Virus record (IMG/VR): IMGVR_UViG_3300009703_004110
Span: 268,271 to 332,270 of that record
Reading direction: 5' to 3' (one strand)
DNA: 64,000 nucleotides
In this document: piece by piece, positions 10,284 through 49,466 of the stretch
Layout: every line of letters starts with the position of its first letter
Numbering within the stretch: the first letter of the stretch is position 1
Program-made: the position numbers and the translations under genes
The notes under the pieces: model-generated
What the model was told of the DNA's origin: nothing
Databases searched by the model: none
The model's input: the letters and a program-made list of their open reading frames with translations, nothing else

Positions 10284-11165
10284 CGCTTTCTCCCTTTGTA
10301 TTTTCTGTCAAAGCTTGCTAATTTTTGCAAGTCAATATTGGCAGGAGAATTCCTCATCTTCCCGCCATCAATAAATAAGTCTAATGCCTGATCTCTAGTG
10401 ATAATAGCCGTAGACTTATCATCTTTGCGCGGGCCCCATCCTAAGCGTAGAAGGAAGTTTAGCATAGCACCTGGATCGACTCCAGAGTCCATGTAACTAA
10501 TCATAGATGCAGCACCGTCCCGTTTTACTTAACTTCTTCTTATCTTTAAACAGAAGGCCGGTATGGGCGTATTGCGGGACTTTAATTCCTGACATTGGAA
10601 TAGTGCTCAAAAAATAATAAAGCACAATCTGCTTACCAGTATTCTTCTGGTGGTCAACACCGCGAATAACATAATTTACACCAATATCAAAGTCGATATC
10701 GTCACAGACATTGGCAAAGTTATATGTTGGCGATCCATTAGACTTAATTAAAACCATATTTGAAATATAATCAAAGTCTGATTGTCCAATCTTAATATCT
10801 CCAGCAATATTATCATGCCATGATTTGCAAGGAAAGTTGTCCCAATCCTGGAAATCTAAAACTACTGCTCCATCGTCTAATCGCTTTGCGAAACCGCCAT
10901 CAATCAGACACTCTGCTACGTGCTGATAAAGATCGAATCGGTTACTCTGATAAACGAGCATATCATAGTCAAGACTGAGCCAGTCCATAACTTTTAAAAT
11001 ATCATCAACTTTGCTTTGATCATTTCTTGCAATATCTGTATCATCAATTCTTAAGATGAATTTTCCGTCTGTAGCCCGAGCTGCCAACCAATTAAAGTAA
11101 GCGGTACGAGCCGTCCCCATATGCATATCACCCGTGGGGCTCGGTGCTATTCTTGTATTAAACAT
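10280..11165 (-). pseudogene. gltX: short glutamate--tRNA ligase (GluRS/GluQ-like catalytic domain) split by a 1-nt frameshift
   Basis: RIAPSPTG-HMGT, LRIDDTD, VIRGVDH; removing one A at 10523-10526 restores KLSKRDGA and joins the two ORFs (about 294 aa). Confidence 0.85.
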
Positions 11166-11385
11166 GCCTACACTCATAATGAAAGTCATCCAAAGTCATA
11201 GCCTTATATTCTGTGAACTCCGAATCTTTATTTAATTTATGTGCAGCCAATACAGCGGTATCTTCTTTAAAGGAAGGACCAGCAGTAATGCTCCATAAAC
11301 CAGGGTCATTACTATAAGGATTGCGAGACCAGCTTGCTACAACCCATAGATCGTAAACGCTTACGTCAGCTTCAGGTATTTCCAT
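11158..11385 (-). CDS. hypothetical protein
   Basis: 75-aa ORF with RBS GAGGCGG. Confidence 0.55.
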   Translation of the reverse strand: MEIPEADVSVYDLWVVASWSRNPYSNDPGLWSITAGPSFKEDTAVLAAHKLNKDSEFTEYKAMTLDDFHYECRHV

Positions 11386-20614: not shown

Positions 20615-20920
20615 TCAACCCCAAGTTGCTGATACAAGATAATGTCCAGGTTCAAGGTGCCCCTTTTTAATCAAGGCCATTATCATCATATTTAAACTTA
20701 CAGTTCCGTCAGAATAGTCCGTCATTTCGGTGACAGCTTCGTCTACCCACTTCTGACGTGATTTAATTATATCACTCGTACAATCGAACAGAGTTTCTCC
20801 GCCGCTATCGTGCCCAGCAATTTCATCTTCATATGGTTCACATGTGAATCCGAAATGCTCCTTGGCTAATGATAGAATATCTTCTATATCCGTCCAATAT
20901 ACTTCTAGTCTCTTTATCAT
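20615..20920 (-). CDS. hypothetical protein
   Basis: 101 aa, overlaps the stop of the RF gene. Confidence 0.6.
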   Translation of the reverse strand: MIKRLEVYWTDIEDILSLAKEHFGFTCEPYEDEIAGHDSGGETLFDCTSDIIKSRQKWVDEAVTEMTDYSDGTVSLNMMIMALIKKGHLEPGHYLVSATWG

Positions 20921-21603
20921 TTGTTTAATTCCCCAAGCTGGCCTCTAGAGTAAGCTTTGTACGTAATAGTTTTATCATTGATGTGATCATAAACTTTGCC
21001 AGCTTGAACTCTAATGGTTCTAATCTTTTCTTCGCCTCTGCCTCCAGAACCAACTTGTTGCTTACGCTTACTTCTTCTGTTCAAATAAGCCTCTCTGTCA
21101 GCTATGGCTTGTAACTTTGCAGAAATAACGCTGAGTGCATTTTCTTTATTCTGCTTTTGACTACGTTCAGATTCGCATCGCACAATAATCCCTGTTGGCT
21201 TATGCTTAATCTGAACAGCAGAGTCAGTCACATTTCTATGTTGTCCGCCAGCACCAGAACCTCGGGCAGTCTTTATTTCAAGCTCATCCTTTCTAAAGGA
21301 TAATTGTTCAGCCTTTTGAGATTCTGGCAGCACGGCGACAGTAATCGTAGAGGTGTGCACCCTTCCTTTACGTTCAGTAGGCGGGACCCTTTGCCACCTT
21401 ATAATTCCCGATTCTTTCTGAAATAACTTACCGGCATTTTTTCCGATAACTTTAAATATAATAATTCCATCCCTACATGTAATCAAATCTATATCTAACT
21501 TATTTCTTTTTGCATACTTACAATAAATTTTGAATTGAATCTTCACTAGATCTTTTGAATCTGATCCGCCTTCGCCCGCTCTTATTTCTATAATTAATGT
21601 CAT
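20917..21603 (-). CDS. RF1-like peptide chain release factor lacking the N-terminal domain
   Basis: EIRAGEGG, RVPPTERKGRVHTS (PxT motif), GAGGQHRN, ERSQ..N. Confidence 0.9.
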   Translation of the reverse strand: MTLIIEIRAGEGGSDSKDLVKIQFKIYCKYAKRNKLDIDLITCRDGIIIFKVIGKNAGKLFQKESGIIRWQRVPPTERKGRVHTSTITVAVLPESQKAEQLSFRKDELEIKTARGSGAGGQHRNVTDSAVQIKHKPTGIIVRCESERSQKQNKENALSVISAKLQAIADREAYLNRRSKRKQQVGSGGRGEEKIRTIRVQAGKVYDHINDKTITYKAYSRGQLGELNK

Positions 21604-26874: not shown

Positions 26875-27389
26875 ATTTCTGCGGGAGCATTAGTTGAGCC
26901 TTGCAGCTTTGCCTTAAAGGCAGACCATTCCTTACGATACATGCCAAGGAGATTCTTTTTCTTAGTATGACAATGCTCTATGTTGGCAATTCGATCTGCT
27001 AACTTTAGAATGATTGCATCTTTAATCTCTATAATCTTGCCATGACTTTTGGCATGACGCTCCCTACGGTTCTTACCAGGCTCATTAGAGACGGCATAAA
27101 CAAGTAATGCCACGTCATCACCGAAGACTTCCGCAACCTCTTCTCTAGTCACATGAGTATCCTCAATAACATCATGAAGAATTGCGGCAAGAATCAGCCT
27201 TCTTGATCTGGCACGTTCATAGTCGTCTTCTAACCAGGGGCCAAATCCATAACGAACCAGCACTTGAGACACTTGTACAAGATGCATAACATAAGGCACA
27301 TTGCCATACATTTGATCGCCATGAGCATCAACAGCAAACTCAATTGCTTTTTGGTATTCACTATCAAACTCTTTAATACCAAACAACAT
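26841..27389 (-). CDS. HD-domain (p)ppGpp hydrolase-like protein (Mesh1/SpoT type)
   Basis: AH..Q, PY..H, AAILHDVIEDT, KLADR..N. Confidence 0.88.
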   Translation of the reverse strand: MLFGIKEFDSEYQKAIEFAVDAHGDQMYGNVPYVMHLVQVSQVLVRYGFGPWLEDDYERARSRRLILAAILHDVIEDTHVTREEVAEVFGDDVALLVYAVSNEPGKNRRERHAKSHGKIIEIKDAIILKLADRIANIEHCHTKKKNLLGMYRKEWSAFKAKLQGSTNAPAEMWEYLERLIAR

Positions 27390-27410
27390 AATACACCTCG
27401 ACTATATTCT

Positions 27411-27440
27411 ATTACCTGTCAGCTTTTCTTTCTAAGTTAG
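27411..27440 (-). promoter_or_regulatory. putative phage promoter, class A motif
   Basis: CTAACT-TAGAAAGAAAAGCTGACA-GGTAAT. Confidence 0.55.
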
Positions 27441-28906
27441 CCGCTAGTTCTCATGGTTGGAAATAAGATTACATCCCGGATAGAGGTTCGATTTGTTAAA
27501 ATCATAACCAGCCGGTCAATACCGATACCTTCGCCAGCCGTTGGTGGCATACCGAAAGTTAAAGCTCTAACGTAATCTTCATCAAAATACATTGCCTCAT
27601 CATCGCCGGCATTCTTCCTCACTACCTGAGCAGCAAAGCGATCAGCTTGATCCATCGGATCATTAAGTTCGGAAAAGGCATTTGCAATTTCCATACCAGC
27701 AACAAATAACTCAAACCTATCGGTCACCCGTGGGTCGTCATCATTACGTCTAGCAAGCGGGCTGATCTCTGTTGGATAGTGAGTTACAAACGTTGGATTA
27801 ATCAACTGATCTTCAATGTATGTATCAAAGATTAATGTAAACATTTCTCCAATAGAGTCTGGTAGCTCACTCTCATAAGCTGGATTAGCTGACTGCCAAA
27901 ATTCGTGCAAGTTTTGAATCGAATAAGGATCGCCCTCAACACCAACCTTTGTTAGCAACTCATCAAACCTGGCTTCGCCCCATTGGCCGAAGTCAATTTC
28001 AGTATCACCATACGGTCTAACTAAATTACTATAGCCAAACAAATCTCCAACCAACTCAGTAATCATATTCTGAGTCATCTTCATTAGATCACGATAAGTA
28101 GAGTGAGCCGCATAGAATTCAACAGTAGTGAATTCAGGATTGTGCTTGGTGGAAATCCCCTCATTTCTGAAATTCTTTCCAATCTCATATACACGATCTA
28201 GCCCGCCAACAATTAATCTCTTAAGATAAAGCTCTGGAGCAATTCTCATAAAGAGATCCATATCTAAAGCATTATGGTGCGTTACGAATGGCTTAGCTGA
28301 CGCTCCGCCAGGAATCGGCTGTAAGGTCGGGGTCTCTACCTCTAAAAAACCTCGATCTTCTAAGTGCCGACGTACTCCGCTAACAATCTTAGATCTTGTA
28401 ATAAAGACTTGCCTACTGTCATCATTGACTGCCATGTCTAAGTAACGCATTCGAGAACGTGTCTCTTGGTTAGTTAGACCGACATGCCTATCTGGCATAC
28501 CCGCAATATTCTTGGAATACAAATGAATCTCTGCTACATTTACAGTCAACTCACCCATGCGCGTGCGCATCATGGTTCCAGCGAACCAGACCCAATCACC
28601 AATATCCATCGCCTTCCATTCGGCAAACTGTTCTGCACCAACAGTCTTCTTTGATACCATAATCTGAATGGCAGCATCTTGACCATTTACGCGGCCAAAC
28701 CCAAGCTTACCAAGCTCATTCTTAAATCGCAATCTTCCAGCGGATGATACGGTCATATCATTCATGGCCGCAATAGAGTGCTCACTATAAGCAGTAACAA
28801 TGCTCTCAACGCTGGTGTCAAATGGTATATCATTCGGATATGGCTCGATTCCTTCTGCCCTGAGGCGTAGCGCCTTGTCTCTCATTTCTTCATTAAACTG
28901 AAACAT
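27437..28906 (-). CDS. lysS: lysine--tRNA ligase (class II)
   Basis: OB fold, FLEVETP, RIAPELYLKRL, FRNEG..HNPEFT, GMPPTAGEGIGIDRL. Confidence 0.97.
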   Translation of the reverse strand: MFQFNEEMRDKALRLRAEGIEPYPNDIPFDTSVESIVTAYSEHSIAAMNDMTVSSAGRLRFKNELGKLGFGRVNGQDAAIQIMVSKKTVGAEQFAEWKAMDIGDWVWFAGTMMRTRMGELTVNVAEIHLYSKNIAGMPDRHVGLTNQETRSRMRYLDMAVNDDSRQVFITRSKIVSGVRRHLEDRGFLEVETPTLQPIPGGASAKPFVTHHNALDMDLFMRIAPELYLKRLIVGGLDRVYEIGKNFRNEGISTKHNPEFTTVEFYAAHSTYRDLMKMTQNMITELVGDLFGYSNLVRPYGDTEIDFGQWGEARFDELLTKVGVEGDPYSIQNLHEFWQSANPAYESELPDSIGEMFTLIFDTYIEDQLINPTFVTHYPTEISPLARRNDDDPRVTDRFELFVAGMEIANAFSELNDPMDQADRFAAQVVRKNAGDDEAMYFDEDYVRALTFGMPPTAGEGIGIDRLVMILTNRTSIRDVILFPTMRTSG

Positions 28907-29249
28907 CTGAGGCTCCGGCGTTTAAAATATCTTCTACTTCAACCATCATTCTGCCATAAGCATCATATGTGCCAGGCAACATCATCATGGTTTCGGCGGT
29001 AAAAAGATTATCTGCTGCACTTTCGTGAACACCGGACAGGTGATCCAAAGCTTCCTCTGTATCCATTCCGGTAATTGATTCAAGTAATTGTTCGTGAGCC
29101 TCTGCATATAAAGATCTGTATTCAGACGGATCTTCCGCAGAGTCATCAACAACCTTCTGTAATGTTTGTCTAAACCTATCAAGCTTTTCTTCCGCAGTAT
29201 TTCCGCGAACACGCCCTGGTCTAAAAAATTCTAATGGGTTATCCTGCAT
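28893..29249 (-). CDS. hypothetical protein
   Basis: 118 aa, overlaps both neighbours. Confidence 0.6.
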   Translation of the reverse strand: MQDNPLEFFRPGRVRGNTAEEKLDRFRQTLQKVVDDSAEDPSEYRSLYAEAHEQLLESITGMDTEEALDHLSGVHESAADNLFTAETMMMLPGTYDAYGRMMVEVEDILNAGASDVSV

Positions 29250-29808
29250 TTGCTCTCTCCATAAGCCTTTTGCTAATCTTCTTCAACTTCTTATTAAAAC
29301 GACTTCGTTTAAGACTGCTAGCGTGCTTAAGGAGAGTGATTCCATCTAAATGGTCAATCTCATGTTGGATAATAACTGCAACAAACCCTGTGAAAATTTC
29401 TTCTACAAAGTCGCCGGTCACTGTTTGATATCTGACAGATACTTCATCTGGCCTTGATACTTTGACGGCCATTGAGGGCAAGGATAAGCATCCTTCTTCT
29501 GACGTGATCTCTGTTTCTGATGCTTCAAGAATTACTGGATTGACGAGCTTTAATGCTCCTGAGGCATATCCTCCACCATAAGCTGATGCCGGAGAATAGT
29601 CTCCAACATGCCCTGTATCAATCACAATTAATCTGCGACTATCACCAACTTGTGGCGCAGCTAATCCCACACCATTGTTGCCGTACATAGTTATCAGCAT
29701 TTCAGACATATATGCGTCCAGATCATCTCCGAACTCATCTTCGGTTACATCACGAGCAACCTGATTCAAAATTGTACTGCCTGGAAATCCAGGAATTAAA
29801 ATTCTCAT
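29239..29808 (-). CDS. def: peptide deformylase
   Basis: GVGLAAPQVG, EGCLS, QHEIDHLDG. Confidence 0.97.
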   Translation of the reverse strand: MRILIPGFPGSTILNQVARDVTEDEFGDDLDAYMSEMLITMYGNNGVGLAAPQVGDSRRLIVIDTGHVGDYSPASAYGGGYASGALKLVNPVILEASETEITSEEGCLSLPSMAVKVSRPDEVSVRYQTVTGDFVEEIFTGFVAVIIQHEIDHLDGITLLKHASSLKRSRFNKKLKKISKRLMERANAG

Positions 29809-29837
29809 AATTACTTTCCTTTATCCAATTTCTTTTA

Positions 29838-29924
29838 TGGCGGAGAGTACAGGATTCGAACCTGTGAGGCTGTTACGCCGACGAGTTAGCAACCCGTTCC
29901 CTTAAACCGCTCGGGCAACTCTCC
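29838..29924 (-). tRNA. tRNA-Ser(GCT)
   Basis: ACGGG-TTGCTAA-CTCGT, long variable arm, GCCA end. Confidence 0.93.
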
Positions 29925-29929
29925 ATACT

Positions 29930-30265
29930 TTATTCTATATATTCAAATATGATATATTCACGAGACCATTCAGGAAAAGCTCTGCGTATCAGTTCTTTGA
30001 CTTTAAATTCTTTATTAGATTGCTGCTTATAGCTTTTAAACTTCTTACGCAATTTAACAGGAATAGTTAATCGCAATTGCTGGCCGCCACCTTCTGGGCA
30101 GACATAATATTCTAATCTAATGCGTTGACCAAATCGACTATAGCCGTTCATTACTTCGTGAGCAATTGATTCAATACGAGGCAGATAGTCTAAAACAATG
30201 TCGTGCGCTTTACTAGCTGTCATCAGATACCTGCTTCTCAGCAATATCTTCCGGCATACTTTCAA
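29930..30265 (-). CDS. hypothetical protein
   Basis: ORF in operon orientation; true start may be MTASK. Confidence 0.5.
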   Translation of the reverse strand: MKVCRKILLRSRYLMTASKAHDIVLDYLPRIESIAHEVMNGYSRFGQRIRLEYYVCPEGGGQQLRLTIPVKLRKKFKSYKQQSNKEFKVKELIRRAFPEWSREYIIFEYIE

Positions 30266-30428
30266 GTCGCTTTAGCTCTAGCAGCCTATCATGCAGATAC
30301 TTTAGTCCGGTAAGTCTCTCCATGTGAAGCAGGTAAGGCACATTTTGCGAGACAACTAGTTGCTCTAAATCGCCCAACACAAGTTCCGCTTTTTCAAATT
30401 CTGTTTCAGCACTCATAATATTCTCCAA
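30213..30428 (-). CDS. hypothetical protein
   Basis: 71-aa ORF, TAG TAA double stop. Confidence 0.5.
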   Translation of the reverse strand: MENIMSAETEFEKAELVLGDLEQLVVSQNVPYLLHMERLTGLKYLHDRLLELKRLESMPEDIAEKQVSDDS

Positions 30429-30542
30429 ATAGGTGCGGCAAAGATTAGGGATCCAAACCCCTTGAAAACAACCTAATCTTTGCCTACCTCTTTGAATAGT
30501 ACCATGCAGAGTAACTTCGTTCAGAAAAATATTCTGTCTTTC

Positions 30543-32213
30543 TTACTCGTATGCATTCATGCTGCCACTTTCAATCTTGGCTGCTTCGACTTCCAACTTC
30601 TCTCGCATCAGTGGGCTTAGAATATCACACTTAGCAGGACGCTTTGCCCAATCAGCATTAAGACGCTCACGCATTTGATCGAAGTCTTCGAAGACATAAT
30701 CAACAGGTCCACAGTCCCAGATGACCTCAAGCAAGTCTGTCTCCATACGATAATCTTCCCAGCTTGTTCCTGTTGCAGGATATACCTTCAACTCAGAACC
30801 AACGGAATTAACGATGGTAAGTCCGGGCAGGCTCATCTTGCTAAGGTCACGACTCGGCTTCTTCATAACATCACGAACCGTTCCGTCCGCATACTCGATA
30901 CGACAAAGCTTGGTTGCACACTTTAGTGTGTCACGGTTCTGCTTCTGTAGCAAACCACCGCCCATACCAAAGGCGACATTCTGAGCACTATAACCAGCAT
31001 TCAAAACGGCACGGAGAATAGCGGCAAGGATGCGAGCATCAATACCGTCTCCCTGGATTACAGCCGCTCCGTTAAGAACCTTGTAACCCTTGCTGTTAAC
31101 TGTCACACCGAATGCTGCCTCGCAAGCTTCCAGTCCATCTAGAACACATCTAACAGGATCGCCAGAGTCAGGACGTACTACGAATAGAATTCCCTGCTTC
31201 TGCGCCAGTGGTGCAATCTGAGGAAGAATCGTCCAAAGGAACGATGCTCGATCAGGATTATTATAGTTATAAGAATCAGCAACACAGCTAAGGATTGCTC
31301 CCTCAGGAGTGATTCCAATAAGATGCTCAACTGCGGCCATTTCCTTAGGCCAAGCTGTCATCACACTGTGCTCAGATGCAAGTACCGATTCACCAACCGG
31401 ACGACCTTCGTTCCACTTAGTTGCAAGCCAACCAGCAGTCATGGTATCAGTACCTTCAAAACTTAGAAGGTGACCGGCACCAGTAGTCATCGCAGTTTCT
31501 GCGCTCGATACTCCACGCGAACCAAAATCATGCAAACGGCTGGGAAGCAAGAAGTCAAGCTCTGCTTCAACAGACTCATCAAATGCGGCACGAATCAGAC
31601 GCCAAACATGACGGCTCTTAGTAGCAGTAACGGACGGGCTCCACAGACGCATCAACGCAGTCTCAAGCCAAGTCACCAGATACACAAACTCATCGTCTGT
31701 TAGATTATCTGTGCTTGCCGTAATTGTAAAGCAAGGAACATTCGGATAAACCACTGTTCCATCACGTAGCGCCTTAATCTTGATGGGAATATATCCACCA
31801 TTATCTACGACCTTCTGCCATAGATGCTTGGGCCAACTCATCGGAGTCTTTGCGACACCATGAGTCTTTAGATAGGTCTCTGCTTCATCTACTTCAAACT
31901 GCTCAATTCGATGAGAGATAACAGTTTCAAATAGGTAGCGCATACCAAAGAAAACGATTCGCTCGTCCTCTGCTGTGAGTGGGCCACGGAATGTAAAGTA
32001 CGCAGTCATTGACTTTGCGTCAGGATACATCTGCCAGTGTCCAGTCTTATAAGTATCCGTGTCCAGTAGGAACGGGATACGTCGAGGGTCGCTTTTTAGA
32101 ATGTCAATCTTAAGCTGTTCCATCAGATCCGCTAAGGCATCTGATCCTGCTGCGCCGTGTATCTGTAAGATATTACATTCTGCTTCTCTAATAATATCAT
32201 TTATATTTCTCAT
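30543..32213 (-). CDS. nadV: nicotinamide phosphoribosyltransferase
   Basis: TDTYK.GH, LHDFGSRG, ASEHSV, VADSYN, RPDSGDP, IQGDG, FGMGGGLLQ. Confidence 0.95.
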   Translation of the reverse strand: MRNINDIIREAECNILQIHGAAGSDALADLMEQLKIDILKSDPRRIPFLLDTDTYKTGHWQMYPDAKSMTAYFTFRGPLTAEDERIVFFGMRYLFETVISHRIEQFEVDEAETYLKTHGVAKTPMSWPKHLWQKVVDNGGYIPIKIKALRDGTVVYPNVPCFTITASTDNLTDDEFVYLVTWLETALMRLWSPSVTATKSRHVWRLIRAAFDESVEAELDFLLPSRLHDFGSRGVSSAETAMTTGAGHLLSFEGTDTMTAGWLATKWNEGRPVGESVLASEHSVMTAWPKEMAAVEHLIGITPEGAILSCVADSYNYNNPDRASFLWTILPQIAPLAQKQGILFVVRPDSGDPVRCVLDGLEACEAAFGVTVNSKGYKVLNGAAVIQGDGIDARILAAILRAVLNAGYSAQNVAFGMGGGLLQKQNRDTLKCATKLCRIEYADGTVRDVMKKPSRDLSKMSLPGLTIVNSVGSELKVYPATGTSWEDYRMETDLLEVIWDCGPVDYVFEDFDQMRERLNADWAKRPAKCDILSPLMREKLEVEAAKIESGSMNAYE

Positions 32214-32243
32214 GAGTCTATTCTCCTATTTGTTTTGCGGGAT

Positions 32244-32453
32244 CTATTCCCTAATTATGATGATGGTTCTCTTTCCATCTTTAATGCCCCTTCCCTTAAC
32301 AGGCTTGGCATTTGTTGGGTTATCATAGTAACCGCCTCTTCCATCGTCTATCCACTCGCCTCTATTACAGTTGCAAGTCAATACAGGTCCGTCTCCGCAT
32401 CTACCATCATAGAGTGCTCCGGCACCACATACACTACACTTATAGTCTCTCAT
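32244..32453 (-). CDS. small Cys-rich protein
   Basis: CxxC..C..CxC, RBS AAGGAG. Confidence 0.55.
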   Translation of the reverse strand: MRDYKCSVCGAGALYDGRCGDGPVLTCNCNRGEWIDDGRGGYYDNPTNAKPVKGRGIKDGKRTIIIIRE

Positions 32454-32477
32454 ACTCCTTTTCCTTCGGGTCTATTC

Positions 32478-33611
32478 CTAGTATGCCATGCTTTCGATAA
32501 TATCAAGGTGATCCTCAAACAAAAGGTGTGGCATATCATTAATGACTTCGCTTAGAGCGAACCATTGTACTCTGGTTACTTCCCTCTCAAATCCACGCTC
32601 GGGCTTAAGTTGGGGAATCTTAAACCATGAAGGAACATCCCATCGAAACGCATGTGTGAGCACACGCCCACGCTGGCTTCTCTTTGGGTGATCGAAACGG
32701 TCTTCCTTAGTCAACCATTCGTCACGTACCTTCATTCGTGTCTCTTCCTGTAGCTCGCGCTTTGCGCCAGCAACAGCCGTCTCATCCGCCTCAAGGAATC
32801 CTCCTGGCAGAGCCCACAGTCCCTTGCCGGGATGTGAGCGACGACGAACAAGTAGAATGTTACCCTGATGGATAACTACATTATCTGTCGTCATAAACTG
32901 TAGCTTATGACCAGCGGGGCTAATTTGCCTAATCCTTTCTCCGGACTCATCAATGATCCAGAGATACTGATCTTTTGGCAACCCTTCTAATGGGTCATAC
33001 TTGCTTCGATACTTTAGAATATGCTTATGTCCAGCGGCCATGTTCTTGCCGTGCTCTGTGCCTATCCATTGGGACAGGAGCTCTGAAGTAGATGAGGCAA
33101 CAAGGCTCATCCAGTCATTGGACTCGTTCATATAAAGTCCGTGCATAATTTCTGCATATCGGCTTTCAATATCTTCAATAACCTCTACCTCAGAATTCCA
33201 TCGAGGGAAGCTATTTAAATAGTCAGTTTCTTCATGCCTTCTATCTACACCATACAAAGTGATATTGCAATCACTTAGTCGGTGATCTGGCCCATAGGCT
33301 GACTTAATTCCTTCTGAGACAGCCTCTTGAACCTTAGTAAGAAAACGTGTCTTATTATACCAGTAATCACGAGCCCTTCTGTATTCGACCTTGTGATAAT
33401 CTAAACCGTAATCTGCAAGGGCCTCATCAATCATGTTTGATCGTTCTGCCGCTACAAAGGGGTCTCTGGAGTCACGGGCTGTATCAGATGAGCCAAGGAT
33501 AACTACTACAATGTTATTATCACTAATGGCCGGGCTGAATAGCCGCTCAATTTGTTCTAGGGTCACAGGCTGAAATCGCCCAATGATTACGCCTACATTT
33601 GGATTCTGCAT
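32478..33611 (-). CDS. nadM: bifunctional NMN adenylyltransferase / Nudix hydrolase (NadM-Nudix)
   Basis: IIGRFQP, LGS..R.PF...ER; Nudix box PGG....E....AKRELQEET; FEDH; the HxGH motif is degenerate (TLEQ). Confidence 0.88.
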   Translation of the reverse strand: MQNPNVGVIIGRFQPVTLEQIERLFSPAISDNNIVVVILGSSDTARDSRDPFVAAERSNMIDEALADYGLDYHKVEYRRARDYWYNKTRFLTKVQEAVSEGIKSAYGPDHRLSDCNITLYGVDRRHEETDYLNSFPRWNSEVEVIEDIESRYAEIMHGLYMNESNDWMSLVASSTSELLSQWIGTEHGKNMAAGHKHILKYRSKYDPLEGLPKDQYLWIIDESGERIRQISPAGHKLQFMTTDNVVIHQGNILLVRRRSHPGKGLWALPGGFLEADETAVAGAKRELQEETRMKVRDEWLTKEDRFDHPKRSQRGRVLTHAFRWDVPSWFKIPQLKPERGFEREVTRVQWFALSEVINDMPHLLFEDHLDIIESMAY

Positions 33612-33637
33612 AAGAGTCTATCTCCTAATTATATTAT

Positions 33638-33910
33638 TTACCACTTAACTACGACGTCGTCTCCCGAGTCGTTATCTCTCTGATCTGACTAAGTACTTCT
33701 GCTGACAGTAAAGCCGTTCTCTTCAAGGGCCGCTTTGATGCCCAAATAAACACGGCCTCTATAGCTGTAGTCTATTTTCATTAGCGACACGCTTACACTT
33801 GTTCTGCCGCTTGCGGCCGCCCGCCTAATCTTTTCGTAAATAGACTCGGGATCTAGCTGCTGTGTTGCCGCATATTTATCGTTTAATTCTTTTGCCTCAC
33901 TGGCTTTCAT
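33638..33910 (-). CDS. small phage protein with in-frame TAG at 33689-33691 (probable readthrough)
   Basis: ...GFTVSRST*SDQRDNDSGDDVVVKW-TAA; the extension fills the gap exactly up to the nadM RBS. Confidence 0.6.
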
Positions 33911-33947
33911 TTTATTCTCTCTTCGGCGTCTGTCGCCTATTTTTATC

Positions 33948-34256
33948 TTACTTTTTTGCGGAAAGAATATCTAAATAAAATAATATCTCCAAGTCATCGT
34001 CGCCAAGACCTGACATGAATTCTTCCCCATCGATTGTAGTCGCACAGCCTGTGTGATTAATTTTAACAAAAGTGACTTTGCCGTGATCTGATACAAAACC
34101 AACCTTATCAGAATCCATAATAACAACATTCATACGCCTTGGCGACGTAACTCTAACTTTTCGACTATTGATTAACGAAATATAAACGAGCATGGCCCGG
34201 CTCTTTTTCTTAGCACAATATTCTATAAAAGAAAGCTTCCGCCCAATCTTTATCAT
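33948..34256 (-). CDS. hypothetical protein, C-terminal LDLF-module family
   Basis: ends ILFYLDILSAKK. Confidence 0.6.
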   Translation of the reverse strand: MIKIGRKLSFIEYCAKKKSRAMLVYISLINSRKVRVTSPRRMNVVIMDSDKVGFVSDHGKVTFVKINHTGCATTIDGEEFMSGLGDDDLEILFYLDILSAKK

Positions 34257-34714
34257 AGCAAAGGAAGGTGGCCGGTAATCCTATCAACATCTTCAACAAA
34301 ACCTGGGCCAATTGCAACGGCTGTCTTTGTCGGAACACCATCAAACTCAGTGAATCCAGCGTCGGTGATTAAAGAGCACGGAAGATTAGCGGCCTTAGCC
34401 GCCTCATATAACTCCACTAACTCTTCTTCACTATCAACACTAACACAGATCTTAGCAAACCTTCCGGCAATCCAAGCACAGACACCCTGTAGCTTTCTGA
34501 TATAACTCTTAAGCCCCCTTGGACCGAAATGTAAATCTACTACCCCGTAAATCCCGCCTTCTTCCCAAAGACCTATATCACCACTACCCCAATCAATTAG
34601 ATCTAATAGTACAGCGCAAGAAGCATGAGCGCCTTGCGACACCATCTTACCTTTCCTCATATTAAGATCTTTTCTTATTATGATTACCTGCTTTGCTTTA
34701 TAATTTTTGGTCAT
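34253..34714 (-). CDS. pth2: peptidyl-tRNA hydrolase, Pth2 family
   Basis: KQVIIIRKDLNMRKGK..SQGAHA, ITDAGFTE, T.VAIGP, ITGHLPLL. Confidence 0.93.
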   Translation of the reverse strand: MTKNYKAKQVIIIRKDLNMRKGKMVSQGAHASCAVLLDLIDWGSGDIGLWEEGGIYGVVDLHFGPRGLKSYIRKLQGVCAWIAGRFAKICVSVDSEEELVELYEAAKAANLPCSLITDAGFTEFDGVPTKTAVAIGPGFVEDVDRITGHLPLL

Positions 34715-35289
34715 ATATTCCTCGGTGGCTTTACGGCCTCAACATTTAAACTAACCAAAGTTCCTTTGTGCCATATTTCATCTGGCAGCTCATTACCATC
34801 CTCATCATGCCTTGGAACATAATCCCTGCTCCAGTCTCTTACATTAGCATGTGAAGTTGTAAATGGATCATATCGTTTGATATTGACAAATCCCATTTCA
34901 GACAAATCTTTTTGAAGCTGGTTGAAATCCCATCCCCAACAGTGATAGTCGTAAGGATTTCTTTGGCCACCGAACATGGTGCCTCTTATCTCAGATAGAT
35001 CACCAGTCTCATTGTAGTGACGAATCAGCCCTTCAAAATCAGGAACCGAAATCCTTAGCATTCCGCCCGGTGCTAACAAATCAAGTAAGGTTGATAGAAC
35101 ATCTTTGTACTCGTGTCGTGAGAAGTGTTCTAAAACATGGCAAGCATAGATGTAATCAACACTGTTCTTTTCAAACTTTGTATGCAAATCTTTTATATCA
35201 CATATCAAATCAGTAGCGTCAGTTTCATAAATATCTATGTTTACAAAGCCTTCTATCTTTTTTGGTCCGCATCCTAAATGTAATTTCAT
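34711..35289 (-). CDS. class I SAM-dependent methyltransferase
   Basis: KLHLGCG, NID, HVLEH, L.PGG.LRISVPD. Confidence 0.85.
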   Translation of the reverse strand: MKLHLGCGPKKIEGFVNIDIYETDATDLICDIKDLHTKFEKNSVDYIYACHVLEHFSRHEYKDVLSTLLDLLAPGGMLRISVPDFEGLIRHYNETGDLSEIRGTMFGGQRNPYDYHCWGWDFNQLQKDLSEMGFVNIKRYDPFTTSHANVRDWSRDYVPRHDEDGNELPDEIWHKGTLVSLNVEAVKPPRNI

Positions 35290-35305
35290 TTTCCCTTCAA
35301 TTTTA

Positions 35306-35381
35306 TGGCACGCTGTAAGGGATTCGAACCCTTGACGCGGAGGTCTAGAATCTCCCGCTCTGACCGCTGAGCTAACAGCGC
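35306..35381 (-). tRNA. amber suppressor tRNA (anticodon CTA)
   Basis: canonical 76-nt numbering gives GGAGA-TTCTAGA-CCTCC; A31-C39 mismatch, G73, CCA end. Confidence 0.85.
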
Positions 35382-35460
35382 AAAATGAAATAGAAAGCTT
35401 AGGCCGAAGCCTTTGTGTCCTCTCTATTTCATTACCCTTTGAATTTTGTTTTTAGCTTGC

Positions 35461-35835
35461 TTACTGAAGGCTTGCCGCATACAGCGCTGTCTTGGCTGAG
35501 TAGTTGCTGTTTGAAAGTGCCCAACTTCTCATCCAATCCCAATCACCCATCACATAGGCAGAGAATTGAGTTTCAGAAAGGTCAATCTCTGTGTCTACAG
35601 ACATTTCCTGCATTCGGATAATTCTATCGAAGGTTTTGACATGTGATTGCAGTTCTGCTAAGCTAAATTGCATATTAACTTTTTCGCCATTCTCTAGTTG
35701 GCGCAGCTTCTTCATTAAAATTCTCTTGGACTCTCGACGATAGCCCTCCATCACCTCTTCATACATTTCGATGTGCTCTTCTCGGTTAGTTCTTAGCGCC
35801 TCAAGAACATCTTTTCTTAATACTGTTACATTCAT
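35461..35835 (-). CDS. hypothetical protein
   Basis: 124-aa helical ORF. Confidence 0.65.
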   Translation of the reverse strand: MNVTVLRKDVLEALRTNREEHIEMYEEVMEGYRRESKRILMKKLRQLENGEKVNMQFSLAELQSHVKTFDRIIRMQEMSVDTEIDLSETQFSAYVMGDWDWMRSWALSNSNYSAKTALYAASLQ

Positions 35836-35862
35836 TTCGTCACGGCTTCCCCTTATATTTCC

Positions 35863-36156
35863 TCACTTTGCATATACCTCGTTCAGAGGCCAGAATCCAT
35901 ATCCTGTACGGATCCCTTTGATTAATCTTCTTAAGATTGCAGCTTCCTCATTAGAAACTACACGAGACCAAAAGTGTCTTAAGAAATCTTCTCTATCTTC
36001 ATAGTCAAGATATTGGTTTGAACCAAATCCATAATGAAGTGGCTGATTAGATGGAATTTTGCTTTGTGCGTTATTCCACTCTTCTTCCTCCATTAATGCT
36101 ACTCCGCCAAGATTAAACTCATCAGCCCAATTATCATTAAAGTAAATTAACAACAA
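35863..36156 (-). CDS. hypothetical protein
   Basis: NWADEF and FGSNQ motifs; RBS AGGAG. Confidence 0.6.
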   Translation of the reverse strand: MLLIYFNDNWADEFNLGGVALMEEEEWNNAQSKIPSNQPLHYGFGSNQYLDYEDREDFLRHFWSRVVSNEEAAILRRLIKGIRTGYGFWPLNEVYAK

Positions 36157-36157
36157 T

Positions 36158-36385
36158 TCAATCTCCTTTGTTATTCAAAAATGAAATGAACACTCCAGAA
36201 CGTTCATCCCACCATGTAAATTCAACATAAATACTTGAAATAACATTTGCTGCACTACTTTTTTCAGTTACTCTCAGCCAAACTCCACCGGGCAAATTCA
36301 TGGCTGATGTAACAATGTCACCACTACCATAGCCACCATAAGATTTATCTACTCTTAACCACTTGCCCATTATGGGGTCGCTCAT
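36158..36385 (-). CDS. hypothetical protein
   Basis: 75 aa, tightly packed. Confidence 0.55.
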   Translation of the reverse strand: MSDPIMGKWLRVDKSYGGYGSGDIVTSAMNLPGGVWLRVTEKSSAANVISSIYVEFTWWDERSGVFISFLNNKGD

Positions 36386-36388
36386 AAT

Positions 36389-37327
36389 TTAACCATTAAA
36401 AAGATGTTTACAAATAGCTCGACCTCTGCGATCGATCTGCTTCCACTTAATCTTAAAACTATCAGATTCTCTTCCGCCAAATATCTTGGCATTACTATGA
36501 ACCTCAGATAAGCCTGCAAGTAACAAAGTAATTGCAACGATCTTATTTCTACAGAACTCTTCAGCTTCTGATGCTTTGATAGTATGAATCTCCATATCTC
36601 TCAGAATAAGCTCTCCAATAATTGGGTCGCCATTAATTTTATTCCAAGTCTGATATGATATCTTTGCGTGATCAGGAAAATGAACACGGCCTTCTTCATC
36701 CATTTCTTTACAGTAAGGCTTGCCACAATCATGCATGGTAGCGTACTGCTGAATGATATCCGATGATAACAAACTATTTTTGATATCCTCTCTGTACCCT
36801 TCAAACCAAGAAGGCAGTTTCCAGTCTAGTCGCAACTCTTGTCCGTCCAGATAATGAAGCAAATCTTCATAATGCTTCCAGACGGATAGTCCGTGCTCGT
36901 AAATTGTTTGCCCTTTGGTCTGCTCTATATGCTTCATATCTCGTACCACTTTTTGGTACGGCGTCTCTGGCTGACTAAATTCTTTTAGTGCCAGCGGAAG
37001 CGAGCCACAGAATCTTCGACCTTTATCTCCAGGCTCAATTGCAAGTGCAGTAATCTGATTGTTAATGTCGGGCTCTCGAAAAACAGAAAATCTAATCTTC
37101 TTCTTTTCGGCTCGTGCAATCAGCTTGATTAGCTCGTCTTCATCCTTCGCAGATAGAATTGCGATATGATTAGAAGACTGATACCATTCCGATTCGATCT
37201 CAGAATGCTCTGAAATGAATTCACGAAATGCGTGAAGTGCCTGTGCAATTTGTGTGCCAGGATCTAAATCCTTGCGAGTAATAATATATAGCTTGTCAGT
37301 TGGACAGAGGCCCTAAGTGTGTTCCAT
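36389..37327 (-). CDS. Pth2-like/HD-domain fusion protein with in-frame TAG at codon 5
   Basis: RBS AGGAGAGGG, ATG GAA CAC ACT TAG then open frame KLYIITRKDL..G.Q.AQ..HA..FREPD..ITALA..LPLAL continuing into the HD domain (HG..V, MHDCGKP, HF.DHA); 312 codons. Confidence 0.8.
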
Positions 37328-37336
37328 TTCCCTCTC

Positions 37337-37744
37337 CTATAAGGTCTGTTGTATGCTATCCATATCTTCTATCTCTATTTCATCAAAGCCAAAGTCGGCT
37401 TGAAATGTGCGGACGCTAGTGCTATCTGTTTCATCAGAATGAATTGAGTGCCAATACTGCCCATCATATTCTGCGTTATTTACAAGATGCACATGATGCA
37501 CATGATAGACTCTTCCATTAATTTCTTTACTTAACCAAGTAGATAAAAGACGCTTATTCTTTCCCGATTCTCCAGCTTCGCCAGTAATATACCAGCCATG
37601 CCCAAATAATGAATCGGTGTTTCCAATGCCCCACTCATCAGAAGTTAAGTTATTATAAAGATGATTCATTCTATCTCTGTAGAAATCCCATTCTCCAATC
37701 CATAGAACATTATAACCAACATCTGAATAAGTATTCCTGCCCAT
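37337..37744 (-). CDS. hypothetical protein
   Basis: 135 aa, RBS GGGAG. Confidence 0.6.
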   Translation of the reverse strand: MGRNTYSDVGYNVLWIGEWDFYRDRMNHLYNNLTSDEWGIGNTDSLFGHGWYITGEAGESGKNKRLLSTWLSKEINGRVYHVHHVHLVNNAEYDGQYWHSIHSDETDSTSVRTFQADFGFDEIEIEDMDSIQQTL

Positions 37745-37796
37745 CTTAATTCTCCCATGTGATATGCAGGCCGGTAGGCGGCAAAATCTTTATAGT

Positions 37797-38027
37797 CTAT
37801 TCACTCTCGTCAGCTTTCTCTTTCACTAATTTAATATAAGCAGTATAAGCAACTTGACTATATGCCATGTTAATTGAGGCGGACATTACTACCAGTGATA
37901 TACCAAAGATTGCTTCTTCATCTGTGCCATGCATCATATCATAAATGATATAAGCAAATTCCTCTGGTGTGTTTTGTTCAATTAATTTCTTACAAAACCG
38001 GGCTGGGTCGATTGACTCTAATAACAT
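37797..38027 (-). CDS. hypothetical protein
   Basis: 76 aa, RBS GAGG. Confidence 0.5.
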   Translation of the reverse strand: MLLESIDPARFCKKLIEQNTPEEFAYIIYDMMHGTDEEAIFGISLVVMSASINMAYSQVAYTAYIKLVKEKADESE

Positions 38028-38043
38028 GGTTTCCTCGTAATTA

Positions 38044-38120
38044 TGGAGGCGACGGCAGGATTCGAACCTGCGAATAGACGAGTTGCAGTCGCCTCCCTTA
38101 AGCCTCTTGGGTACGTCGCC
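38044..38120 (-). tRNA. tRNA-Cys(GCA)
   Basis: GGCGA-CTGCAAC-TCGTC, U73. Confidence 0.95.
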
Positions 38121-38150
38121 ATTATGGGGAGATTTCTCTCCCCAATTAGA

Positions 38151-38513
38151 TCAGTTCAAAAGTTCCTTCACACGTTCCAACGTCCAGTCCTTCCTTTCGG
38201 AATAACCTACGTGAGACTTAATGATGCTCAAAACCTCTTCCGCGTCAGGCGCCTCCTTGCAACTTGCTTCAATCTTACGATAAGCCATACCCCTAATGAG
38301 GCCATTGGCTACGTTAAGACTGCGAGCATAAGATGCCCGGTCAACACGAAGTGATGCTGCCGCATACGTAGTGTTGCCCCAATGCTTAGTCTCCTGAGAG
38401 TCTATCATCTTCTGCGCTGTTTGAAATAAAGTTCTGGCTCTTGCCTTCACCATACGGCGATGGTAAGCGGTTGACTTAAGTTCTGCTCTAAGTAGTTCAC
38501 GATACATATTCAT
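38151..38513 (-). CDS. hypothetical basic helical protein
   Basis: 120 aa; R...(V)A.GL.RG..Y..IE motif; follows the amber/RGPP leader. Confidence 0.7.
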   Translation of the reverse strand: MNMYRELLRAELKSTAYHRRMVKARARTLFQTAQKMIDSQETKHWGNTTYAAASLRVDRASYARSLNVANGLIRGMAYRKIEASCKEAPDAEEVLSIIKSHVGYSERKDWTLERVKELLN

Positions 38514-38529
38514 TTTGTTTTATCCTTTT

Positions 38530-38649
38530 TTAGTTTTTTTGAATTGCTGCCATCACAGCCGACTTTGTGTGGCACGATTTAAACGCTGTTATATCAACTC
38601 CAAAACTAAAAGGTGGACCTCTTGCATAAGTCTAACAATATTCTCGCAT
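38530..38649 (-). promoter_or_regulatory. leader peptide MREYC*TYARGPP... (amber stop followed by an arrest-like motif)
   Basis: RBS GGAG, TAG at 38632-38634, RGPP 4 codons later, hairpin at about 38548-38574, TAA abutting the next RBS. Confidence 0.65.
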
Positions 38650-38714
38650 AACTATCTCCATATTAACAATATACCGAAGTGTACATTGTCGTTCAAAAAA
38701 ATTTAATTAGTTTC

Positions 38715-39482
38715 TTACAGAAACCTACTAACGTACTCTCTATCTTCTTTAAAGAGAGGAATCTCCCAGTCGATAGTCCATCTATTACGTTTGGCTATCA
38801 CAGTTTCTTTAGCCCCATGCTTCATAAAAGTCACAGGTTCTTCAAAGCTTTTACGAGTTACAGTAAATCCTTTTTGAAAATGACTTGGGACGTCTTCCCA
38901 CGGAGTACCATTATTTCTCAACATTTCTTTCATCTGCAAAACAGTTCTACCATTACATTCTTTATGAGAAAAATAATGCCTTGCATACATTGAAACAGAA
39001 TTGCGCAAAGCGTCTTGCTGTCTCCATACAAAAGCATTAACAACTTCATGCTCAGGAAGATTCCAGAACCTAGAATCAAATTTTGGTCTAGAGTCTGCAA
39101 GGCTTGGATCGCTCATAACTAATGCTGCATAAAACTCAACTGCTACAGCAGAAGCAATAACGCTATTCATCTTTCTGGTTTTATAACCAAAATAAGGCTG
39201 AGTCTGCTCTGATTCAGTATCAGTTATTAGAAAGGATATTTCATCAGACTGGACGTAAGCCATCTTACAACCTTGGATTTCTTGGCACCCAACAATGGCA
39301 CCTACAGCCATAGCCAAAACAAATTTTTCATTCCAAGGAGAATTAGCTTCTTTCTTTAGACTCTTAGTAAATTTACTAAAATTCTTTCCATCTACTCGGC
39401 CAATAACAGGAACGCCACTAACTAGCTTAAAGTTAGTTTGCTTCTCGTAACCCTTCATCCTATTTTCTAATGTATCAAACAT
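38715..39482 (-). CDS. thg1: tRNA(His) guanylyltransferase Thg1 / Thg1-like protein
   Basis: RMKGYE, RVDGKNFSKFT, YVQSDEIS, FDSR, WRQQDA.RNS. Confidence 0.93.
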   Translation of the reverse strand: MFDTLENRMKGYEKQTNFKLVSGVPVIGRVDGKNFSKFTKSLKKEANSPWNEKFVLAMAVGAIVGCQEIQGCKMAYVQSDEISFLITDTESEQTQPYFGYKTRKMNSVIASAVAVEFYAALVMSDPSLADSRPKFDSRFWNLPEHEVVNAFVWRQQDALRNSVSMYARHYFSHKECNGRTVLQMKEMLRNNGTPWEDVPSHFQKGFTVTRKSFEEPVTFMKHGAKETVIAKRNRWTIDWEIPLFKEDREYVSRFL

Positions 39483-39912
39483 CGGGAGCCTCTCCGCTCT
39501 TAGTTATCTGCTCAGCTGCCGCAATACCCGCCAGCTTATCAACCACTTCGTTATATTCATTTCCAGCATGACCCTTAACCCATTTAATATCAAGGTTTGG
39601 ACAGTTTTCTAATTTTTCTCTTATTGTTTTAACACGCTCGGTATTCTTCCTAGCAATCCAGTTCTTAGTAAAAAGTCCCACACAGTAACTTGAGTCGGTA
39701 TATATAACGGCCTCTTCCCAATTCCTGCCTTCTCTTATTAGATAATCTATGGCATACTCTATTCCGCTCATTTCAGCAACATTATTTGTCTCGACTCCAA
39801 TGTGGCCGGCACAATAGTGTATTACCTTATCATCTTCTAAAACTATAACGCCATATCCTGCTGGACCTGGATTGGTTGGCTTGCATGAGCCATCCGTATA
39901 TATTGAGATCAT
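39475..39912 (-). CDS. rnhA: ribonuclease HI
   Basis: IYTDGSC..NPGP.G, TNN.AE, TDS.Y, WVKGH.G...NE.VD. Confidence 0.95.
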   Translation of the reverse strand: MISIYTDGSCKPTNPGPAGYGVIVLEDDKVIHYCAGHIGVETNNVAEMSGIEYAIDYLIREGRNWEEAVIYTDSSYCVGLFTKNWIARKNTERVKTIREKLENCPNLDIKWVKGHAGNEYNEVVDKLAGIAAAEQITKSGEAPDV

Positions 39913-39932
39913 CTGTTATTAGACTCCTTAGG

Positions 39933-40544
39933 TTATGCTAGCTCCTCGTAAAGAGCCTCGTCATTTCTGCATCTTTTACGTAGTTCAGTATACCAAGCTT
40001 GATTCTTAACTTTGAACATTAAGACGCCAGGCTTCTTTGGATGCTTGGCTTTGCATACTACGCCTTCGAATGTCATCCCCGGTAACGTACCGTTTCTAAC
40101 TTGCTCTAAGAACGTGGCATTCGGCTTACCTCTATAGAGCATAGGTGCTATATCTAAATGTCCAAACAGCTTTAAGAATTCTTTGGGCGGAACCATTCCG
40201 CTCTTAAATAGATTGGCATCAAACAAGACTATTTGATGCTCTTCGGTATTGTCGTGCCATCCAAAAGATGAACTCTCTCCAAAGAATTCAAAGAACAATA
40301 CGACTTTATCGAGCCGTTGTTTTCTCATGATCTTGGAAACATCATCTTCGTACTTATTTCGGATAAGACCTATGGCTTCACCAAAGGTTTCGTCGTCTGC
40401 ACCAAGCATTCTCTTGCGAGTGCCAAACTTATAGAAGCCACGCTTCTTTGACCATTCGGCTCTGATGTTGGAACCATCTAATTTGTCAAAGGCATAAACA
40501 TCAAGATTAGATATCTCGCCTGTTATTGATGGATACTGTTTCAT
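39933..40544 (-). CDS. RNA ligase-like nucleotidyltransferase (Rnl2-type core)
   Basis: KLDGSN, EFFG, FD, EGVV, KVK. Confidence 0.75.
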   Translation of the reverse strand: MKQYPSITGEISNLDVYAFDKLDGSNIRAEWSKKRGFYKFGTRKRMLGADDETFGEAIGLIRNKYEDDVSKIMRKQRLDKVVLFFEFFGESSSFGWHDNTEEHQIVLFDANLFKSGMVPPKEFLKLFGHLDIAPMLYRGKPNATFLEQVRNGTLPGMTFEGVVCKAKHPKKPGVLMFKVKNQAWYTELRKRCRNDEALYEELA

Positions 40545-48943: not shown

Positions 48944-49389
48944 GCCGTTACCTGCAAGATATCAAGATAGAACAAAATACTTTCCTTGTCTTTATTACCA
49001 AAAGCGATATCAATCACATGGTATCGGTCTGTCAGTCGAATGGAGTATTGATCGCCCTTTAGAAATAACATTAGAGTTGCCAAATATTACTCGGCTGCCG
49101 TCTCTACTCGGTCTTAATATAACATTAGAAGTTCCAACCCAAAAATCAAGGGACTTTTGCAAATGATTGTCAAAGAGTCAATCTCTACAAGCCTCTCCGC
49201 AAATCTGATATAATCACCCGGGCTATAGCTATTTACTGAACCACTAATCACTTCGGCATGTGTTCCACCAATCTGTGGGTGAATCTTACACTTACCTCTA
49301 CTGCACGGGTTCTTTGGCTTGCTATAGAAAAACTTTCGTAATATACTTCCTATAAGATCCATCGACCTTCCGTGCGGCTATATGTTAAA

Positions 49390-49466
49390 TGGCTGGGGTA
49401 GTAGGGTTCGAACCTACAAACCTTCCGGTTCAAAGCCGGATGCTCCACCAGTTGAGCTATACCCCA
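49390..49466 (-). tRNA. tRNA-Gln(TTG)
   Basis: T1-A72, TCCGG-CTTTGAA-CCGGA, GCCA end. Confidence 0.93.

Follow-up and report, generated by a model that had tools for sequence, protein, structure and literature searches.

This analysis concerns a stretch of 64,000 nucleotides (the window, positions 268,271 to 332,270) of the virus record IMGVR_UViG_3300009703_004110. The window contains a small protein gene that is interrupted by an in-frame TAG, a tRNA with a CUA anticodon, and a gene for a PTH2-like protein whose reading frame meets a TAG shortly after its start. The source is a single virus record of 332,270 bp with a GC content of 39.7% and represents a jumbo phage. All coordinates given below are those of the window, and the small gene, the tRNA(CUA), the PTH2-like gene and the NadM-like gene downstream of the small gene are all located on the minus strand. 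TAG was translated as Q, W or X solely at sites where this was justified by the genome's own tRNA(CUA).

The small gene starts with an ATG at 33910-33908. Its codons 1 to 73 (33692..33910) encode a member of phrog_5321 that ends in GFTVSRST, and codon 74 is the TAG (33689..33691), which stands in the context ACT TAG T. It is followed by 16 further codons, SDQRDNDSGDDVVVKW (33641..33688), and by a TAA (33638..33640) that closes a frame of 90 codons. The end of this frame is fixed by the downstream gene (32478..33611), which encodes a NadM-like cytidylyltransferase with a Nudix domain (377 aa): an AGGAG (33626-33622) lies 11 nt past the TAA of the small gene, and the NadM-like ATG (33611) is found 10 nt beyond the AGGAG. 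In the relative L001 (Logan DRR337523), the junction of the two genes has the same layout, including the position of the TAA relative to the ribosome binding site of the NadM-like gene. The original prediction, namely that the frame runs past the TAG to a TAA just ahead of the nadM ribosome binding site, is borne out by these coordinates.

It had also been proposed that the C-terminus of the protein lies beyond the TAG. A homology search with the 90-residue product led to a family that can be aligned with it end to end. The match to phrog_5321 yielded 25.4 bits for the 73-residue product and 36 bits for the read-through product, which reached position 87 of the 92 positions of this profile. 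By means of a word search, the protein P0002 was identified, which consists of 90 aa, is 70% identical, and spans the entire read-through product; the neighbourhood in its contigs (PTH2, small protein, NadM-Nudix, NAMPT) is the same as in the window. An exhaustive profile search yielded 51 family members, nearly all of which comprise 82-95 aa and were aligned over positions 1-90. All of the 46 aligned homologues possess 14-24 residues beyond the TAG column, and none ends at that column. The syntenic orthologues are uninterrupted and have lengths of 90 and 92 aa. The placement of the C-terminus beyond the TAG is therefore supported. The read-through form with its 90 residues has the end-to-end length of the family; the 73-residue form would be the only member that stops at position 73. 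A second truncated member was considered in P0018 (62 aa) and rejected, as this sequence breaks off in a run of A where its contig stops. The C-termini of the family share the motif G[FY]xVxR...DxRD...[IV]SW, which the window protein acquires solely by read-through of the TAG. The terminal residue W90 is invariant, and D84 is conserved to at least 90% across the family alignment. A similar motif, G[YF]xV...DQRD...[IV]xW, had been named in the original prediction, and the alignment confirms it as a true feature of the family.

In order to score the extension, a family profile was built without the window sequence. This independent profile assigned 87.2 bits to the truncated protein and 114-117 bits to the read-through form. 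Two controls were calculated: 108 extensions taken from behind the stops of other genes in this genome gave a maximum of 94.9 bits when substituted for the real one, and shuffling the real extension 200 times gave a maximum of 101.5 bits. As judged from these scores, the post-TAG extension is homologous to the C-terminus of the family beyond chance. A comparison at the codon level points in the same direction. Between the window and L001, the nucleotide identity of the post-TAG codons is 62.5%, yet 13 of the 16 residues are identical. Eight of these 13 residues are encoded by different synonymous codons, including two serine switches between TCN and AGY. The pre-TAG part has a nucleotide identity of 61%, and the post-TAG pattern matches it. 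Read in this way, the comparison shows that the extension is under long-term purifying selection; such a pattern cannot date the TAG.

The AlphaFold model of the small protein, which was calculated with 39 sequences, has a pLDDT of 89.4 and consists of three helices (residues 3-16, 21-33, and 48-63) and three strands (38-42, 68-76, and 81-89). Residue 74 is located within strand 2, and the modelled extension contributes the end of this strand, a hairpin turn and strand 3. According to the model, a 73-residue product would miss a core beta-strand and is unlikely to fold. No Pfam match was found for the small protein. The best match in the PDB had a Z of 6.6, which is not significant and too low to indicate more than a shared common fold, and the similarities were to SirA/TusA, Smr, R3H, and IF3-C-like folds, i.e. 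small alpha/beta sandwiches of the nucleic-acid-binding type. The matches in BFVD were uncharacterised phage proteins throughout. The position of the small gene is fixed, between PTH2 and the genes of NAD salvage and within a tRNA-rich island for translation and repair; this suggests an RNA- or translation-related role.

At the position of the TAG codon, the syntenic orthologues from L001 and from the TARA contigs L009-L012 contain TGG, and the three closest orthologues carry Trp. The conversion of TGG into TAG requires a single transition. Across the family, this column is variable: Gly occurs 19 times, Trp nine times, Tyr eight times, Phe three times, and seven other residues once each. If the residue at codon 74 is exchanged, the score against the profile changes by under 3 bits. 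It had been anticipated that an alignment could reveal the amino acid specified by UAG. Trp was indeed seen in the orthologues, but what the alignment shows is the ancestral residue and not the amino acid that would be inserted at UAG.

The tRNA(CUA) (35306..35381) is one of 25 tRNAs identified by ARAGORN in the genome and lies 1.4 kb upstream of the small gene on the same strand. This amber suppressor forms a cloverleaf with an encoded CCA, G73, and a G1.U72 pair. Orthologues exist at the syntenic position in L001 and L009. The CUA anticodon and the unusual G1.U72 pair are kept in all three copies, and compensatory changes among the copies are found in the acceptor, anticodon, and T stems. 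By this comparative measure, the tRNA(CUA) is a functional tRNA under selection. Its blastn neighbours are of mixed isotype (Arg, Ile, Asn, Ala, Sup), and tRNAs of the phages XacN1 and CBB are among the best local matches of the window copy. The discriminator base differs among the orthologues, being either G73 or A73. No TrpRS- or TyrRS-like gene was found in the genome. GlnRS and LysRS recognise U35. Because of this recognition and of what is known about CUA tRNAs, the residue inserted at UAG would most likely be Gln or Lys, with Trp as a possible candidate.

Further tRNA- and synthetase-related sequences were noted. At 10497-11189 (minus strand), a GluRS/GluQRS-like catalytic domain of 230 aa without an anticodon-binding domain is encoded, for which no link to the tRNA(CUA) was established; this gene ends in a TAG, and an extension by 25 codons brings no added homology. 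Just upstream of the tRNA(CUA) of L001 (L001:8965-9207), an 80-aa catalytic fragment of the GlnRS type was found, which contains the HIGH motif (PF00749, 92.5 bits) and may be the remnant of a former pair of GlnRS and tRNA. At 49373-49466, ARAGORN predicted two overlapping tRNAs, Arg(tcg) on the plus strand and Gln(ttg) on the minus strand, one of which is probably an artefact.

Reading TAG through in the interval between the tRNA-Cys and the tRNA(CUA) exposed the case of the PTH2-like gene (36389..37327), in whose product an HD-like domain is located C-terminal to the PTH2 domain. An AGGAG (37338-37334) precedes the ATG (37327-37325), and the gene starts with ATG GAA CAC ACT TAG. The TAG is codon 5 (37315-37313), and it is followed by 307 conserved codons that extend down to position 36389. 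The first 121 of these contain no ATG, GTG or TTG. The PTH2 domain (PF01981, residues 12-102), which scores 39.8 bits compared to a gathering cut-off of 23, would be missing from the product without translation past the TAG. On the basis of this Pfam match, the protein is a predicted member of the peptidyl-tRNA-hydrolase family. Because an uninterrupted distant homologue begins with MEHKLCPEG...KLYIIT, the upstream ATG can be regarded as the true start. Genome-wide, this is the only gene for which the stop of a short ATG-initiated open reading frame (ORF) opens a long frame without a nearby start; the next start is 121 codons away, compared to at most 19 codons in the 14 other matches to this pattern.

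The same layout was found in four other lineages, where the sequences around the early stop read MEKS-TAG-SLCSTDK (L001), MENS-TAG-GLNPTDK (the TARA contigs L009-12), MAKS-TAG-SLCPTDK (L013), and MEKT-TAG-IQKKDK (L023). The corresponding loci are L001:7701-8639 and, in L009, about 9773-10708. As in the window, the TAG is codon 5 in these lineages; in L022 and in pT24 it is codon 3. The latter is a cultured Tenacibaculum jumbo phage (LC168164, L019), and its PTH2-like gene (L019:2954-3906) starts with ATG AAA TAG; the next 48 codons belong to the PTH2 domain and include no start. A tRNA-Sup (CUA) is annotated 2.6 kb upstream of this gene. The deposited coding sequence BPT24_235 starts at L019:3088 and thus inside the PTH2 domain, which suggests that its true start is to be sought some 45 codons upstream of the annotated one. 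Taken at the level of sequence, the PTH2-like gene is a conserved client of the suppressor tRNA.

Two features were observed in the DNA upstream of the PTH2-like gene. A conserved DNA element with the sequence TTTTRCCGCC...CGGY, which can form a small hairpin and displays a compensatory change from G-C to A-T, is located downstream of the tRNA-Cys at 37746-37796 (minus strand), at L001:7635-7690, and at about 9700-9740 in L009. It coincides with the 16-codon extension past the TAG of the ORF 37797-38027, which was considered as a peptide and rejected in favour of the conserved hairpin. Between this element and the PTH2-like gene lies an ORF of 135 aa without a family match (37337-37744, minus strand); its stop codon, a TAG, shares nucleotides with the Shine-Dalgarno sequence that precedes the PTH2-like gene. 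L001 and L009 lack this ORF at the corresponding position, which means that it was either inserted in the window or lost from these relatives.

The relation between early stop and suppressor anticodon was surveyed by means of a scan of IMG/VR. The scan gave 80 loci; 47 include the N-terminal domain, and 38 are non-redundant. The motif filter used in this survey missed some loci that contain the N-terminal domain. Suppressor tRNAs were sought within about 6 kb of each gene, i.e. in loci of 12 kb. An ATG followed by 1-7 codons and a stop, positioned 8-20 codons ahead of the TRxDL motif, was found in 46 of the 47 viral loci, and this early stop is a TAG in 45 cases and a TGA in one. The base after the early stop is a purine in each of the 38 non-redundant loci (31 A, 7 G), and 28 of these loci contain no canonical start between the early stop and the motif. 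A suppressor tRNA is present in 20 of the 38 loci, and its anticodon fits the type of the stop in all 20 cases (19 TAG/CUA and 1 TGA/UCA, no mismatch). A TGA stop is paired with a UCA suppressor in L078. In L021, the stop at codon 9 is a TGA and a tRNA(UCA) lies 707 nt upstream; in L020, codon 9 is a TAA and a tRNA(UUA) lies 488 nt upstream. In E. coli genetics, a 3' purine favours amber suppression. A further locus, L079 (IMGVR_UViG_3300045257_000081), has a reversed domain order, with the HD-like domain in front of the PTH2-like domain, and is preceded by a mini-ORF consisting of MNT and a TAG.

It is thus probable that many standard-code jumbo phages carry a suppressor tRNA together with a PTH2-like/HD-like gene that is gated by a cognate, purine-followed stop at codons 3-9, that stop and anticodon co-vary, and that this gene is the first natural client identified for such a tRNA; the Trp74-amber codon of the small gene would then represent collateral buffering and a first step to recoding. 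Two ideas fit the anatomy of this arrangement. On the one hand, the expression of the PTH2-like gene could be coupled to a working and charged suppressor tRNA, which would act as a timer or as a self-check. On the other hand, since release factors act poorly on very short nascent chains, the early stop could leak selectively, with no loss of tightness at ordinary terminators.

For the small gene itself, we are inclined, with somewhat less assurance, to assume a lineage-specific Trp74-to-amber allele that is buffered by the pre-existing suppressor tRNA of the phage, with no genome-wide recoding. The gene would encode a conserved 90-residue phage protein whose Trp74 codon has turned from TGG into TAG in this genome, and the lineage would keep the tRNA(CUA) in order to express the early-stop PTH2-like gene. 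Because the relatives possess the tRNA but have a TGG in the small gene, the suppressor is older than the TAG. The tRNA(CUA) must work in this genome, since the intact PTH2-like gene cannot do without it, and because that gene requires a functional UAG-decoding tRNA, some read-through is to be expected at any UAG. As the infected cell would contain the tRNA(CUA), a part of the ribosomes would insert an amino acid at UAG codon 74 and complete the 90 residues, and the remaining ribosomes would stop after 73 residues and release a product without the core beta-strand. The occurrence of read-through in vivo, its efficiency and the inserted amino acid are what we infer from sequence.

Several observations weigh against a buffered allele. 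The TAG of the small gene is unique to this genome and shows no sign of being favoured by selection, and a recent null allele is conceivable. The 3' context of this codon is TAG T, as opposed to the purine that follows all 38 conserved early stops, and read-through may consequently be inefficient. The window copy of the tRNA, which carries U32 and G37 as well as an A31.C39 mismatch, is the most divergent of the three and could be a weaker suppressor than the copies of the relatives. The phage moreover encodes a truncated release factor of the RF1 type (20917..21603, minus strand, 228 aa), which contains the PPT and GGQ motifs and lacks domain 1. It scores 202.9 bits with prfA and 149.1 bits with prfB; it covers positions 114-328 of the 361 positions of the prfA model with a score under the equivalog cut-off and is not a four-domain protein. 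As predicted from its motifs, this factor may modulate UAG termination. It would favour termination at UAG, something one would not expect next to a tRNA that suppresses this codon. Finally, the DNA of the window was seen in the source sample alone, and the metagenome scan returned the source contig only. Searches with the small-gene region by megablast and tblastn yielded no close relative among the deposited phages, and a scan of viral contigs with the small protein as query gave no match.

Some of these observations are equally expected for a plain nonsense mutation, which would leave a dispensable pseudogene or nothing but a truncated 73-residue protein, with negligible read-through and an irrelevant suppressor. 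The restriction of the TAG to this genome, beside orthologues with TGG, is in line with this explanation, and so are the TAG T context, which differs from the TAG-purine of the client gene, the role of TAG as a true stop of most genes, and the presence of the RF1-like factor. It is difficult to reconcile with the conserved and intact PTH2-like gene, which needs a UAG-decoding tRNA in the same genome, with an extension that is intact and has kept every family-conserved residue, and with the loss of the core strand from the truncated form. We therefore regard a plain nonsense mutation as unlikely, albeit deserving serious consideration.

A selected, programmed read-through, in which the TAG is kept so that the isoforms of 73 and 90 residues are made in a constant proportion, or so that the protein depends on the suppressor, would draw on a logic that the PTH2-like gene of the same genome uses, and an ACT codon precedes the TAG in both genes. 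Because the TAG of the small gene is not conserved, it does not have the appearance of a selected recoding site; L001, L009 and 46/46 family members have a sense codon at this position, and the 73-residue isoform is unlikely to fold. This makes a programmed event improbable.

Less probable still is an error of sequencing or assembly, or a minority variant that entered the consensus, with G (TGG) being the true base. A single-base difference in a metagenome assembly, in a sequence that occurs in no independent sample, does invite this suspicion. The JGI contig and the Logan assembly of the same run agree over 6.2 kb and are 100% identical; the Logan contig is a separate assembly of the source run and so not an independent sample of the TAG, and polymorphism cannot be seen in contigs from one run. 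Substitution errors are, in addition, rare in a high-coverage consensus.

A genome-wide reassignment of TAG to sense, as in code 15, is compatible with the presence of the tRNA(CUA) and is refuted by the results for the genome as a whole. Under the standard code (code 11), the coding density is about 95%, and TAG is not depleted, as it terminates 66-68 of the approximately 390 ORFs (about 17%). The in-frame extension after TAG has a median length of 6.5 codons and is not longer than after TAA or TGA, and extensions that fill gaps are not enriched (4/57 for TAG vs 8/202 for TAA). Read-through candidates at the genome positions 100119-100853 and 255955-256656 were rejected, because homology ends at the TAG. 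Likewise, five pairs of same-frame ORFs split by a TAG were rejected as read-throughs, since no family spans any of them. In-frame TAG codons supported by homology were found in two genes of the genome only, the small gene and the PTH2-like gene. By all these measures, UAG is not a general sense codon here, and the genome uses the standard code.

With respect to the surroundings, the region from about 27000 to 40000 of the window is a dense island for translation, tRNA repair and NAD metabolism, in which tRNAs are interspersed among PTH2, methyltransferase, NadM-Nudix, and NAMPT genes. Pfam hits in L001 and L009 comprise Thg1-like proteins, RNA ligase, RNase H, peptide deformylase, a class-II aminoacyl-tRNA synthetase, ADP-ribosylglycohydrolase, and NADAR. 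At the start of the genome (C1:1-2500, outside the window), plus-strand ORFs with Ala-, Arg- and Pro-rich translations differ from the rest. In IMG/VR, the record is listed as a provirus that was excised from a contig of 391 kb, and the first 2.5 kb could represent flanking host DNA or a chimeric end.

The arrangement can be compared to known systems. Laboratory amber mutants of T4 and lambda grow on suppressor hosts, and T4 psu1 is a suppressor derived from a serine tRNA. The situation proposed here is similar in that a tRNA with a CUA anticodon compensates for the nonsense codon of a phage gene; it differs from the laboratory mutants in that it concerns a natural population and that the phage itself carries the suppressor as a conserved gene, for which a native client exists, instead of a mutation selected in the laboratory. 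Minigenes such as lambda bar provoke peptidyl-tRNA drop-off and interact with Pth activity. The PTH2-like gene likewise opens with a mini-ORF of 2-8 codons and a stop, a likeness in architecture alone. In contrast to lambda bar, this mini-ORF is in frame with and fused to a coding sequence that is itself peptidyl-tRNA-hydrolase-like, and it is paired with a cognate suppressor tRNA.

Suppressor tRNAs also occur in recoded phages, namely crAss-like, Lak, and Agate phages (bioRxiv 10.1101/2021.08.26.457843; Peters et al., PMC9523058). As proposed here, a suppressor tRNA of the phage reads an in-frame stop in these cases while the host keeps the standard code. The difference is that TAG remains an ordinary terminator in our genome and only two genes contain an in-frame TAG; there is one conserved client with a stop at codons 3-9, whereas many codons are recoded in those phages, in late and lysis genes. 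According to the model of Borges et al. (bioRxiv 10.1101/2021.08.26.457843), in-frame stops can accumulate at previously lethal positions once a suppressor tRNA has been acquired. The Trp74-amber allele fits this model, because the suppressor tRNA would have come first and the in-frame stop later. Standard-code jumbo phages with a tRNA(CUA) are further represented by XacN1, CBB, and pT24. For XacN1, all 18 amber stops were read through in silico by the authors, and no target for the CUA tRNAs was found (PMC5852040). In contrast to XacN1, two targets were identified here, one of which is conserved across dozens of phages. A survey of jumbo phages mentions PTH2 in such phages but not the suppressors (PMC7824862). 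Within the limits of the searchable library, no paper was found that joins Pth2, suppressor tRNA and phage. The pairing of a suppressor tRNA with an early-stop PTH2 gene thus appears to be undescribed within the literature searched.

One practical consequence is that standard gene callers truncate or mis-start the PTH2-like gene, as exemplified by BPT24_235 of pT24; as this phage is in culture, the idea is directly testable. Many large phages with a standard code have annotated suppressor tRNAs, the targets of which are a recognised gap, and the window supplies two. The Trp74-amber allele, which looks accidental, is a case from nature in favour of the proposed route to recoding: a suppressor is present at the outset, and in-frame stops can be tolerated thereafter. 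The PTH2-like gene with its early stop, for its part, points to regulatory suppression, by which an enzyme of tRNA recycling or repair would be made only if the suppressor tRNA of the phage works.
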